This document shows positions 6,454 to 42,073 of a stretch of DNA of 64,000 nt, piece by piece. Below the pieces are notes generated by a model, which was given only the letters and a program-made list of their open reading frames with translations, did not search any database and had not been told where the DNA came from. Made by a program: the position numbers and the translations under genes. Numbering within the stretch: the stretch's first letter is position 1; every line of letters begins with the position of its first letter. The stretch comes from Diadema antillarum (taxonomy: Eukaryota): NCBI RefSeq assembly GCF_040938485.1, contig NW_027271533.1, positions 434,001-498,000 of the forward strand, written 5' to 3'.

Positions 6454-7027
6454 TCATTGAAGAATTAAAGTCGAAGTAACATGGGCAATCCTCCCGCGTG
6501 TTTTCAACATTCCCTCGTTCTGATAGTGGTTAGTCGCCTGAGCTGGCGTGATATCACCTGTGGCCAGGGCAGGTCCGGGAGGAGCAGGCATGTAACAGTG
6601 GGTGAGGGGGGACGTTGGTTCGTCGCCCACTTCATCGCTGTTGGATGTCGCGTTCGGATTTTCCACGTAGGTGTATTCGTGGTCCCGCGCGGACGCGTCT
6701 CGCGCAAGCATCTCCGCGTTTTTCTCTGCATGTGGTGAATTGTTGCTGTGTTTACCATCGCTGGATGTCGCATGGGGGTCAGCGCGGCCGCAATTGCCCA
6801 TGACCGATGCGTAATCACGCTCGAGTAGGGTTTGCCCCGAGAACGATCTACCGTCGTTGGGTTGTTGACGCACAGAGTAGTAGTTATGTCCTTGTAAACC
6901 GTTAGGGTTCGAAACCTGTGTAGGCTGATCTCTGTCGTCGGAGTCGGCCCTGTTGTAATTATTCGATTGACGGCTCGTCCTGATGTTCATATTAAAGGCA
7001 TTCTGGCCTTTTCTCCTAGACGGCACA
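6454..7027 (-). CDS. Gene A exon 9, cytoplasmic tail
   Basis: Acceptor ttttcttttag, phase 2, basic stop-transfer VPSRRK, then 190 open codons with YYSV, YASV, YTYV and YQNE motifs. Confidence 0.8.
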
Positions 7028-39738: not shown

Positions 39739-42073
39739 TATAATGACAATTATAATAATGTTGGAAAAGGTCATTCATTCGTTGAATTCATTCCGTTTAT
39801 TTCGTTACCTGATATTTGCCTAAACAATGTTAAAACAGGAAGGTGTTAGAGAAGGAGAAGAAAAAGGAATCTCTCCTTTGCACCCATTGTACTTTTTTGT
39901 ATTTTTTTTTTTTGTACTGATCATGTAGATATGAACATGTTGTTATCCCGGGCTGGCTACGTACATTCTCAACGACTCGTATGTCAATATTTATCATATT
40001 GTTTCTTGTACATTCTGTTGGGGAAAAAAAAAAGTGAAAATAACGTTTGAATTTGAATTTGAATTTGAAACAAAACAAAAAAAAAATATGCTCCGTGCCA
40101 CCGCGAAGTTATGAGCTCCATCGCAGGGTTAGTAAATAAATTGCTCTGACAAAATACGACACTACAAAATAGATGTAGTAATATTTGTGACGTATTAGAT
40201 GATATTGTTCTAACTATAGATTTTAAGTTATTGAAGAAATGTAATCACGTAACTTTTCTTGGTATTCAAATTGACAAACATTTACAATGGAATGAGCATT
40301 TCGATTATGGGAACAATAAGGTTTCGAACTGTGTTGGCTTTTTATACAAACTAAAAAATTGCTTTCCCCGATCTGCTCTTCTCATTTTTTTTTTTTATAA
40401 TTTGTTGATATTACCCTATTTGTCATATTGTCTAACAGTTTGGGGCAACAGTAATCAGTACAAGTTAAATTCTATTTTGAAATTACAAAAGAAGGCTGCA
40501 CGTATTTGCACAGGGAGTCATTATCATTCTCATTCTACGCCACAGTTTAAACAACTTAACATATTACAAATTCAAGATTTATATTCCTACCATATTGCAA
40601 TACTCGGCTTCTTTTATTTCAAAAACTTGTTACCATTGCACATAATGTAAATGTTAATTATCAATAACAATATTCACCATTATGAGACCCGCAAAAGTCA
40701 TGATTTTCATTTGTTTAAAGTTAACTCCACTTTTGCTCAAAGATCTGTCAGATTTAGCTTTCCTGTCATCTGGAACTTATTACCATATGAGTCATGTCAA
40801 ACATTAAGATTGCTAAAAAAAAACCCTCAAAAGGTCGTTTTTACTGAATTATTGAATTATTCATGAAAAATTGATCTCCCTTATTTTGTATCTAAATATC
40901 TTTGTATTTGTGTGTGTGTGTGTGTGTGTGTGTGTTTTATGTGTTTCCTCATCAATCTGACTTGTTGTAATATATGCCAGTAAAATACCTCATTAGATTT
41001 TTTTAAGAGAACTTACATCCTCACAAGGCTTCTAAAGCTTTCCTCCATGTCCTCTTTTTTATTTCGCATTTAATTTTACCAAAGACAGTATTCCTCAGTT
41101 AAATATCTAAGTGCGTTATTTTGTTAATTGTTATGTCCATTATGTTCTTATCAATTATTGTATGGTTTGTATTTATGTATGTATGCATTGCATGTTTGTT
41201 TGTTTTTATCGTAGAAATCAATAAACGAACTGAACTGAACTGAACTGAACTGAACTGAAGTTCTGTGTAAGTATGTACCATTGACTTAAAATACAACATA
41301 GCCAGCACCAATTCACTGTTCCCTTCAGCGGCATTTTCTACTTTCAGTGTGCAAAGAATGTAGAACGCGCGAAGAAAATTAGTAAAAGAAAAGCTTTATA
41401 CCTTAACCTTACCTGTAAAATGCCAGGAAACGCGAAGAAACACGCATTAGCCAATTATTTACCCAGTGATTCGGAAGATTTAACGTTCAAGTGCTAAATC
41501 TGGCATACAGTATGATGCACAAAATTAATGTGCACAAGATGGTTACAGCTAAAGAGTACATTCACTTTCTTATGAGATACTGATACTCCTTTTACAGAGG
41601 AGGCGTTGATAACAAATTAATTTGAAGAAAAAATTAAAGTAGCTGTTCCGTGCAAAATTGCCACCAAGTTCCATTTACAGGACATTCCTCCTTTTCCTTC
41701 CTTACAACGTTTCCTCTGAAATATGTCTTTAAAAAGGCTAGATTCAACAACTTCTTTATTTGGTCTCCGTATCAAAACTCATATGGAAGAGTGGCCTGGA
41801 GCATGGAACATCATTGCCAGTAAGATGATAGGCATTCAATTATCATGCTATAGACCCTATACTCATAAATCAACACGAATTGTGAAGAGAATGCACTTCT
41901 TCTCTACCACCTCTCTGGTAAGACAAGCACACCTTGCCTGATATGCTTAAATACGGGAATAAAAAAAGAAAATCGAGATACATACCATTCGAAGCCGCTC
42001 GCGTCTGCAAAATATGAAAAGATAGCATGAGCATTAACACGCATAAAGACGTAATCCTCGAAAGAGATTCCAT
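26556..42073 (-). CDS. Receptor gene B: SP-SRCR-WSC-3x sushi-TM-Tyr-motif tail, intact, 639 aa
   Basis: Exons 41986-42073, 39325-39558, 36693-36779, 33315-33426, 32316-32494, 31112-31312, 29140-29331, 28835-29029, 27673-27754, 26556-27105 sum to 1920 nt. All phases are compatible and there are no internal stops. Confidence 0.88.
27673..27754 (-). CDS. Gene B exon 9, transmembrane
   Basis: DSPGYLSAGVVFGVICATLICTALIVF(C); 82 nt, phase 1-2, donor GTAAGT. Confidence 0.88.
28835..29029 (-). CDS. Gene B exon 8, sushi/CCP 3
   Basis: GSCEELQAPMNG...FSCSHDYLLMGDEILQC...WNGTVPEC; 195 nt, phase 1-1. Confidence 0.9.
29140..29331 (-). CDS. Gene B exon 7, sushi/CCP 2
   Basis: GSCKKLEAPANG...FGCNYNYVLEGDYVLTC...WNGTIPVC; 192 nt, phase 1-1. 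Confidence 0.9.
29396..29670. mobile_element. Palindromic CAGCCCA(T/C)GAG-repeat MITE, copy 1
   Basis: Left cagcccacgag repeats, right ctcatgggct repeats, end gggtgtcggtctcgtgagatgaccc. Confidence 0.7.
30675..30926. mobile_element. Palindromic CAGCCCA(T/C)GAG-repeat MITE, copy 2
   Basis: TIR cores gaccgacacccatgagtcatacagcc / ggctgtatgactcatgggtgtcgatc. Confidence 0.75.
31112..31312 (-). CDS. Gene B exon 6, sushi/CCP 1
   Basis: GFCDELPPPING...HFGCDDGYELSEDAHVQC...WKGNIPTCI; 201 nt, phase 1-1. Confidence 0.9.
32316..32494 (-). CDS. Gene B exon 5, WSC C-half
   Basis: INGYPFAALGRGECVC...EQCSTICPGNRFQACGGPG...AYYT; 179 nt, phase 2-1; gives 8 WSC cysteines with exon 4. Confidence 0.88.
33315..33426 (-). 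CDS. Gene B exon 4, WSC N-half
   Basis: VYGYEGCFRMDD...NSNDDCIEAC(R); 112 nt, phase 1-2, donor GTAAAG. Confidence 0.85.
33523..34876. mobile_element. Non-autonomous hAT-superfamily element
   Basis: 17-bp TIR CAGTGGCGTATCTAGGG, perfect 8-bp TSD ACTACGAG (33515-33522 and 34877-34884), three internal tandem units of about 230-255 bp, no transposase ORF. Confidence 0.92.
36556..36639. repeat. (CAT)n microsatellite
   Basis: Direct reading. Confidence 0.95.
36693..36779 (-). CDS. Gene B exon 3, SRCR C-half (GC donor)
   Basis: SEVQIVHCLVLNLPIVTCPHEYDQAIICQ; 87 nt, the same length as gene A exon 3; donor CAAG|GCAAGT. Confidence 0.8.
38704..39195 (-). mobile_element. 3' fragment of CR1/L2-group (Crack-like) LINE ORF2
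   Basis: PYLNYGILAWG...LQKRAIRII...HHYPTRQ...YTGPKYWNDLP...SLSSFKRKL. Confidence 0.85.
39325..39558 (-). CDS. Gene B exon 2, SRCR N-half
   Basis: DDIRLAGGDQPNQGILQIFQDGIWGSICGYQWDFDNARVVCREMGFPG...LTSCFG; 234 nt, phase 1-1. Confidence 0.9.
39591..39757. repeat. (AAT)n/(ATT)n microsatellite upstream of the SRCR acceptor
   Basis: Direct reading. Confidence 0.9.
40231..41260 (+). mobile_element. 3' fragment of CR1/L2-group LINE with 3' UTR and (AACTG)n tail
   Basis: FLGIQIDKHLQW...PYLSYCLTVWG...LQKKAARI...HHYETR...WNLLP with one stop; AATAAA followed by (GAACT)n at about 41219-41258. Confidence 0.8.
41986..42073 (-). CDS. Gene B exon 1, signal peptide
   Basis: MESLSRITSLCVLMLMLSFHILQTRAASN; donor G|GTATGT, phase 1. 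Confidence 0.75.

Follow-up and report, generated by a model that had tools for sequence, protein, structure and literature searches.

We analyzed a stretch of 64,000 nucleotides from the genome of the sea urchin Diadema antillarum (contig NW_027271533.1, C645 in our numbering, positions 434001-498000), taken from an assembly of 1.75 Gb in 2963 contigs. This whole stretch is called the window below, and coordinates given without a contig name are window positions. Two genes, A (21970-6454) and B (42073-26556), lie head to tail on its minus strand. Each codes for a signal peptide, a scavenger receptor cysteine-rich (SRCR) domain, a WSC domain, one or more sushi domains, a transmembrane (TM) segment and a cytoplasmic tail (Table 1). 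A second contig, C63, is colinear at 539329-574081 with window positions 43000-6000 at 98.6 to 99.8% identity; the window and C63 are two haplotype copies of one locus, placed on separate contigs. Because both genes combine a signal peptide with one TM helix, their products are predicted to be type I surface proteins. We put the probability at roughly 0.7 that our overall reading is correct, in which A and B are real adjacent genes of the SRCR superfamily, a superfamily much expanded in echinoderms, and encode type I membrane receptors.

Gene B comprises 10 exons with a joined length of 1920 nt, all of them intact in both haplotype copies, and its spliced product is exactly 639 residues long without an internal stop. 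It consists of a signal peptide, a two-exon SRCR domain with six cysteines, a WSC domain with eight, three sushi domains, a TM segment and a tail of 176 residues. The intron phases are 1, 1, 1, 2, 1, 1, 1, 1, and 2; all acceptors are AG, and all donors are GT except the one after exon 3. Sushi domains 2 and 3 share 34 of 63 residues, and their exons are tandem duplicates. Gene A has 8 exons and a single sushi domain. Its exons 1 to 4 read cleanly in the window, and its copy on C63 is intact throughout (eight exons, 1566 nt, 521 residues, no internal stops).

Table 1. Exons of genes A and B and other features of the window (a slash in a donor sequence marks the exon-intron border; Cys, cysteines; Tyr, tyrosines; bits, Pfam scores)
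Feature	Positions	Strand	Description
Gene B exon 1	41986-42073	-	ATG at 42073, signal peptide (best 15-residue window, mean Kyte-Doolittle 2.13); donor G/GTATGT, phase 1
Gene B exon 2	39325-39558	-	SRCR N-part, 3 Cys; Pfam SRCR 3.6e-13, 50.1 bits
Gene B exon 3	36693-36779	-	SRCR C-part, 87 nt, 3 Cys; GC donor CAAG/GCAAGT
Gene B exon 4	33315-33426	-	WSC N-part, 3 Cys; donor AG/GTAAAG, phase 2; Pfam WSC positions 1-35, 15.4 bits
Gene B exon 5	32316-32494	-	WSC C-part, 5 Cys; Pfam WSC 5.6e-8, 33.3 bits, positions 37-82
Gene B exon 6	31112-31312	-	Sushi 1, 4 Cys, phase 1 at both ends; Pfam Sushi 28.0 bits
Gene B exon 7	29140-29331	-	Sushi 2, 4 Cys; Pfam Sushi 32.7 bits
Gene B exon 8	28835-29029	-	Sushi 3, 4 Cys; Pfam Sushi 30.8 bits
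Gene B exon 9	27673-27754	-	TM segment, mean Kyte-Doolittle 2.78 over 19 residues; donor TG/GTAAGT, phase 2
Gene B exon 10	26556-27105	-	Cytoplasmic tail and TAA stop; low hydrophobicity; six Tyr on the cytoplasmic side, one of them in Y-S-N-E close to the end; no Pfam family
Gene A exon 1	21841-21970	-	ATG at 21970, second ATG 19 codons in, signal peptide, phase 1
Gene A exon 2	20177-20389	-	SRCR N-part, 3 Cys; Pfam SRCR 1.9e-12, 47.8 bits
Gene A exon 3	18137-18223	-	SRCR C-part, 87 nt, 3 Cys; GT donor
Gene A exon 4	16107-16252	-	WSC N-part; donor GAG/GTGAGA, phase 0; Pfam WSC 22.9 bits, positions 1-43
Gene A exon 5	13060-13199	-	WSC C-part; window copy with 4 extra bases (3+1) relative to C63, frame lost; C63 copy Pfam WSC 20.9 bits
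Gene A exon 6	12082-12293	-	Sole sushi; window copy with 5 extra bases, three frame shifts and a stop; Pfam Sushi 14.5 bits, against 4.9e-10 and 40.1 bits in C63
Gene A exon 7	8725-8798	-	TM segment; window copy with 1 extra base; donor TG/GTGAGT, phase 2 in the intact copy
Gene A exon 8	6454-7027	-	Cytoplasmic tail and TGA stop; 8 Tyr (YYSV, YASV, YTYV, YMPAPPGP, YQNE); no Pfam family; 99% identical in C63
Assembly gap (N run)	17179-17359	.	Intron 3 of gene A, between exons 3 and 4; no exon touched
Assembly gap (N run)	23531-23672	.	Intergenic, past the gene B stop and ahead of the gene A start codon; no exon touched
Retroelement fragment	38199-39195	-	Insertion of about 1 kb in gene B intron 2, about 130 nt past the exon 2 donor; missing from C63; outside the coding model

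Domains were assigned with the Pfam cut-offs of 26.1 bits for SRCR (PF00530), 27.8 bits for WSC (PF01822), and 20.7 bits for Sushi (PF00084). Family, structure, genome and protein searches were run exon by exon, and joined translations were used only for frame checks and for one local tblastn comparison with an 18-kb locus. Exon 2 of either gene scored well above the SRCR cut-off. A group A SRCR domain is classically encoded by two exons, as it is in both genes, where the second of the two measures exactly 87 nt. Exons 2 and 3 contribute three cysteines each, so that the domain has the six cysteines of group A rather than the eight of group B (PMC10855680). The best single-domain relatives of the gene B SRCR among solved structures in the PDB, i.e., SR-AI, Mac-2BP, and SCARA5, are group A SRCRs as well. 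The C-terminal half of the gene B WSC domain passed the WSC cut-off by itself, while each of the intron-split halves of the gene A domain, taken alone, stayed below it. Eight WSC cysteines, distributed 3+5, are found in gene B and in the intact copy of gene A; the window copy of gene A carries a ninth, created by an extra TGC. No solved WSC chain matched the C-terminal half of the gene B domain at E<=1. All three sushi domains of gene B and the single one of gene A in its C63 copy showed four cysteines, the conserved tryptophan and a score above the Sushi cut-off, which the window copy of gene A misses owing to its frameshifts. Hydrophobic segments matching a signal peptide and a TM helix are present in both genes. 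A preliminary description of the locus, made from the sequence alone, had already given the two head-to-tail genes, their order of domains, the length of the gene B product, the cysteine counts, the 87-nt exon, the one and three sushi domains and the signal and TM segments, and all of these hold.

The same exon-wise Pfam scan returned no CUB or Kringle match in any exon of A or B. Nor was a CUB domain found ahead of the SRCR domain: in each gene the signal-peptide exon leads straight into the SRCR exon in phase 1, the one long open frame in gene A intron 1 gave no CUB hit, and gene B intron 1 holds retroelement frames. Local single-exon comparison detected no further family exons elsewhere in the window at E<=1e-3.

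The proteins encoded by A and B are strongly diverged, as first described, with identities of 33/70 in the N-part of the SRCR domain, 7/28 in its C-part, 33/84 in the WSC domain and 27/66 in the sushi domain (that of A compared with sushi 1 of B). The additional claim that the genes share their intron phases is correct for the phase-1 borders that flank the SRCR, WSC and sushi domains and for the phase-2 TM/tail junction, which is common to both, but not for the intron inside the WSC domain. This intron is in phase 0 in gene A, between ...SSGLE and CFC, and in phase 2 in gene B, after ...EAC and about 13 codons earlier. Most WSC copies in the genome are single exons (among the matches listed, at least 150). 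We also considered whether the gene B intron is a repeated "introner" and rejected this, as only its two haplotype copies exist. Since the positions differ, most genomic WSC domains are uninterrupted and the gene B intron is no repeated element, the two intra-WSC introns probably arose independently. Between the TM segments and tails of the two genes, BLASTP shows no similarity (E=2.5). Judged by these comparisons, A and B are old paralogs only as far as the ectodomain goes (25-47% identity) and have unrelated cassettes for TM segment and tail.

A cassette of the gene B type occurs at another locus. Contig C94 carries a gene with a B-type tail in which a two-exon SRCR domain and a single-exon WSC domain are present and no sushi domain is found. 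Its TM exon is 93% identical to that of gene B, and the first 113 residues of the tail are 94% identical. At the DNA level, window positions 28271-24759 match C94:714176-717901 over about 3.5 kb at 75-86% identity, and this homology takes in the two cassette exons of gene B, the intron that precedes its TM exon and its 3' flank; the ectodomain exons of gene B have no DNA match at the C94 locus. The introns of the cassette are 20-30% diverged between C94 and gene B around nearly identical proximal tail codons. Over tail codons 1 to 111, four differences separate C94 from the C63 allele, none of them synonymous, and the window allele shows a synonymous divergence (dS) of 0.07 from both. Near-identity forms a sharply bounded island over the opening 333 nt of the tail exon, which makes gene conversion between B-type cassette copies likely. 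At C94 positions ~716160-716420 the B-type tail loses its frame after about codon 113, with later similarity in another frame, and this stretch may be a decayed copy or contain a consensus error.

The cassette region is also where the two haplotypes part. Their only strongly diverged block lies at 23673-28900 (C63:552500-556462), with 19-59 substitutions per kb and a dS of about 0.07-0.13, while the flanks stay below 3 substitutions per kb, and it covers the TM and tail exons of gene B together with the 3' flank. A 9-base indel distinguishes the haplotypes at 27756-27757, directly before the acceptor of the gene B TM exon; the AG stands at the same place in both, and one DNA run shows the form found in C63. 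Homologous ectodomains of A and B joined to unrelated cassettes, a B-type cassette on the sushi-less C94 gene and a cassette block that alone is diverged between haplotypes led us to consider a broader proposal, according to which the SRCR-WSC-sushi genes of this urchin form a modular receptor system, where segmental exchange would shuffle ectodomains and TM-tail cassettes among loci and gene conversion would keep the copies alike. We offer this as a speculative proposal, which we would expect to prove wrong more often than right.

The preliminary description took the domain layout to be that of a candidate undescribed family. That does not hold, as the order signal, SRCR, WSC, Sushi, TM has been tabulated for Apl028 and Apl029 of Acanthaster planci (PMC10855680). 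In Apl028, the signal peptide occupies residues 1-25, the SRCR domain 35-128, the WSC domain 132-216, the Sushi domain 240-302, and the TM segment 330-350, and Apl029 has the same order (Table S6 in PMC10855680). These proteins (429 and 460 residues) have the SRCR, WSC and Sushi domains in single copy, followed by a TM segment and a tail, and so match the layout of A exactly and that of B in all but the number of sushi domains; they are shorter than A and B, with tails of about 79 and 142 residues. The same survey counts SRCR proteins carrying a WSC domain at 9 in A. planci, 9 in a phoronid, 3 in amphioxus, and none in vertebrates, and describes the sea urchin expansion as one of genes rich in group A SRCR domains (PMC10855680). 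For Strongylocentrotus purpuratus it counts 36 SRCR proteins with WSC, 38 with Sushi, and 35 with CUB (PMC10855680), and, as far as such per-domain counts allow a comparison, A and B resemble these members in belonging to an echinoid expansion of group A SRCR genes with frequent WSC and sushi partners and tandem arrays. The SRCR-WSC-sushi-TM layout is thus catalogued and echinoderm-wide, although unnamed and functionally unstudied, and A and B are a new member pair of this receptor class and not a new class.

The D. antillarum genome contains at least 150 WSC matches and 2258 SRCR candidates. The nearest SRCR relatives of gene B are only 45-49% identical, and one of them, on contig C127, has the same SRCR, WSC, sushi order. 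In a protein search with the SRCR N-part exon of gene B, the best 150 hits were all multi-SRCR proteins; hits were ranked by summed score, and this exon is poorly suited as a query for the subclass. A Pfam scan of ten of the shortest or most similar hits found 4-10 SRCR domains in each and no WSC or sushi domain. Among better-known proteins, SR-AI, SCARA5, MARCO, and Mac-2BP share with A and B a six-cysteine SRCR domain and surface or ligand-binding roles; however, SR-A, MARCO and SCARA5 are type II collagenous proteins, Mac-2BP is secreted and none has a WSC or sushi domain, whereas A and B are predicted to be type I with both. Kremen1/2 are vertebrate single-pass type I receptors of Kringle-WSC-CUB-TM layout, and A and B are like them in placing a WSC domain within a short mosaic ectodomain. 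They are not Kremen members, as Kremen1/2 have Kringle and CUB domains and no SRCR or sushi domain.

The tails were described at first as tyrosine-rich and of a shared signalling type. Tyrosine makes up 7 of 182 residues in B and 8 of 190 in A, about 4%, which is an ordinary content, and with no similarity in sequence the supposed common type comes down to a likeness of length and composition. Both tails are of low complexity, contain 15-16% hydrophobic residues and are rich in S, T, N, G, P, and D, a composition which, together with the low hydrophobicity, suggests that they are probably disordered. A word search among proteins of 100-318 residues returned no relatives of the gene B tail. Besides the gene A motifs given in Table 1, we noted YDYPTF, YSAF, YDDT, and YSNE (YHNE in the other allele) in gene B, so that YxxV/F and a C-terminal YxNE are present in both. 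Neither tail contains a YxxL/I pair, as an immunoreceptor tyrosine-based activation motif (ITAM; YxxL/I, 6-12 residues, YxxL/I) would have. A canonical inhibitory counterpart (ITIM; (S/I/V/L)xYxx(I/V/L)) is absent from both as well, with H, R, and H at position -2 of the three YxxV motifs of gene A and only YxxF motifs in gene B. The tyrosine motifs fit docking of SH2 domains (YxN, Grb2 type) and AP-2 sorting (YxxPhi) equally.

Group A SRCR and WSC domains are ligand-binding modules, and sushi repeats often have a spacer or binding role. From the combination of SRCR and WSC, glycan sensing by A and B would be a fair expectation. At the cell surface, these two modules would bind a ligand of microbial or self origin, either glycan or polyanionic, with the sushi repeats serving as a stalk, and the tail would recruit cytosolic adaptors through its short tyrosine motifs, YxxV/F and the C-terminal YxNE. 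We take the products of A and B to be candidate ligand-capturing surface receptors with a tail that would recruit adaptors through its tyrosine motifs, which do not tell signalling from endocytosis. Phosphotyrosine-dependent SH2 docking of the tails is possible, at about one chance in three, and AP-2-type endocytic sorting is slightly less so; the two are compatible.

Two narrower accounts would each commit the tails to one of these outputs. The first, close to the preliminary reading, sees in A and B a receptor pair dedicated to immune pattern recognition, with a common signalling-type tail whose phosphorylation on tyrosine would pass on the signal. Group A SRCR receptors do bind microbial ligands (PMC10855680), the tail tyrosines often follow acidic residues (ERDY, HEY, SSEY, HTYDY), and both tails have, close to the C-terminus, a YxN(E) motif of the Grb2-SH2 type, which is kept between the B alleles as YSNE and YHNE. 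Yet the tails of A and B are not homologous, ITAMs and canonical ITIMs are missing from both, the same motifs match YxxPhi sorting signals and the ratio of nonsynonymous (dN) to synonymous divergence between alleles is 0.65-0.9, so that this account appears doubtful. The second, to which we give no better odds, would make A and B endocytic scavenger-type or adhesion receptors whose ectodomain captures ligand and whose YxxV and YxxF motifs are AP-2 sorting signals for its uptake, with no kinase-dependent signalling. In its favor are the three YxxV motifs of A and the two YxxF motifs of B, the free evolution of the tails outside short motifs and the closeness of the SRCR domain, among solved single ones, to those of SR-AI and SCARA5, which are class A scavenger receptors with an endocytic role; but chance YxxPhi matches are common in tails of 180 residues, and the YxN motif and the proline-rich MPAPPGP of gene A suit adaptor docking equally well.

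A further question is raised by the window copy of gene A, in which exons 5 to 7 contain 10 more bases than in C63 (4, 5, and 1), giving 14 stops when the same splice sites are used. These breaks, with splice sites conserved, are what a recently inactivated pseudogene on this haplotype would show, leaving gene B and the other-haplotype copy of A alone functional, and pseudogene alleles are frequent in multigene immune-type families. However, between 9 and 16 kb the window differs from C63 by about 90 extra single bases and only about 7 substitutions, across introns and exons alike, whereas in the naturally diverged part of the locus (24-28 kb bins) substitutions equal or exceed indels. Exons 1-4 and the tail ORF (open reading frame), moreover, are identical to those of the intact copy (99% for the tail). 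The D. antillarum draft (1.73 Gbp, 2,964 scaffolds) was assembled with hifiasm from HiFi reads, patched by RagTag with an Oxford Nanopore Technologies (ONT) assembly and put through Racon polishing; it has a depth of 11x, 2.5% heterozygosity and 84% duplicated BUSCOs (bioRxiv 10.64898/2026.05.24.727502). Differences that are almost all insertions and are scattered over introns and exons are expected of an imperfectly polished ONT patch, unlike allelic decay, and we read the breaks in gene A as assembly errors. Gene A is very probably intact in the animal and broken only in the consensus of this contig, and a true pseudogene is improbable. The stretch 9000-16500 as a whole resembles an unpolished long-read patch, in which gene calls would show false frameshifts. 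A model of gene A using a phase-2 WSC donor, CG/GTATTA, was tried and discarded: it keeps the frame in the window but loses two WSC cysteines, and the intact C63 copy has the phase-0 donor listed in Table 1.

The assembly gap in gene A is flanked by exons 3 and 4. Both are phase-1 exons that can be spliced to each other in frame, giving the SRCR-to-WSC order of gene B, which has no exon between the two domains. The C63 flanks of both gaps are colinear with the window, leaving 191 and 150 bases between alignments where the window has 181 and 142 N. That one or both gene models are artefacts, either arrays of exons that are never expressed or pieces of a longer gene with additional exons, as the want of transcript joints, the GC donor of gene B and the gap at 17179-17359 could suggest, is very unlikely, because all 18 exons are phase-compatible with open frames, AG acceptors and, bar one, GT donors, both models run from an ATG and signal peptide to a TM segment and tail, every gene B exon is intact in both haplotypes with no other family exon in the window, and the same architecture has been refined with transcript support in other echinoderms (PMC10855680).

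Several observations nevertheless weigh against our overall reading of A and B. Gene B exon 3 requires a GC-AG intron, whose consensus is otherwise perfect; the nearest GT, 4 nt beyond the GC donor, would disrupt the frame. No run recorded as RNA covers the stretch. One DNA run and three small runs of unspecified type do cover 26556-32494, and their pieces span exon-intron borders without exon joints, behaving as genomic contigs do; the sole joints in these runs fall in high-copy repeats. The intactness of gene A is argued from the C63 copy, and the likeness to Apl028 and Apl029 is a comparison by published domain table only. The ordinary tyrosine content of the tails counts in the same direction. 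So does the weak constraint on the gene B tail, which is identical between alleles at 158 of 182 residues (dS 0.094, dN 0.062, ratio 0.65), with a dN/dS of 0.9 over the last 71 codons. Retention of tyrosines as a sign of function was considered and dropped: five of the six are kept between the B alleles at a residue difference of 13%, a result that chance would produce in about 80% of cases.

Other features of the locus lie in the introns of gene B. Between sushi 1 and sushi 2, positions 29328-29723 and 30318-30911 are very high-copy repeats, with a summed contig depth reaching 10^4 or more in a DNA run compared to about 15-40 elsewhere, and they show many repeat-to-repeat joints and an inverted arrangement. 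Within the retroelement insertion of intron 2, a 163-residue open frame on the minus strand (38704-39195) resembles the C-terminal part of the polymerase of a non-LTR (long terminal repeat) retrotransposon, and similar frames occur on the plus strand of intron 1 at 40231-40866.

Echinoderm innate-receptor repertoires are very large, and to our knowledge almost no echinoderm SRCR gene has a known ligand or output. The pair described here supplies two clean, compact SRCR-WSC-sushi gene models for D. antillarum, a species hit by mass mortality, that can be used in expression and binding studies. It also carries two warnings for annotation, namely that both haplotypes sit in the assembly as separate contigs and that dense single-base insertions make intact genes look like pseudogenes in some stretches. 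Should the modular proposal be true, one ectodomain type could feed different intracellular outputs, like the paired activating and inhibitory receptors of vertebrates, and cassette sharing between loci, if general, would bear on how receptor families diversify their signalling ends.

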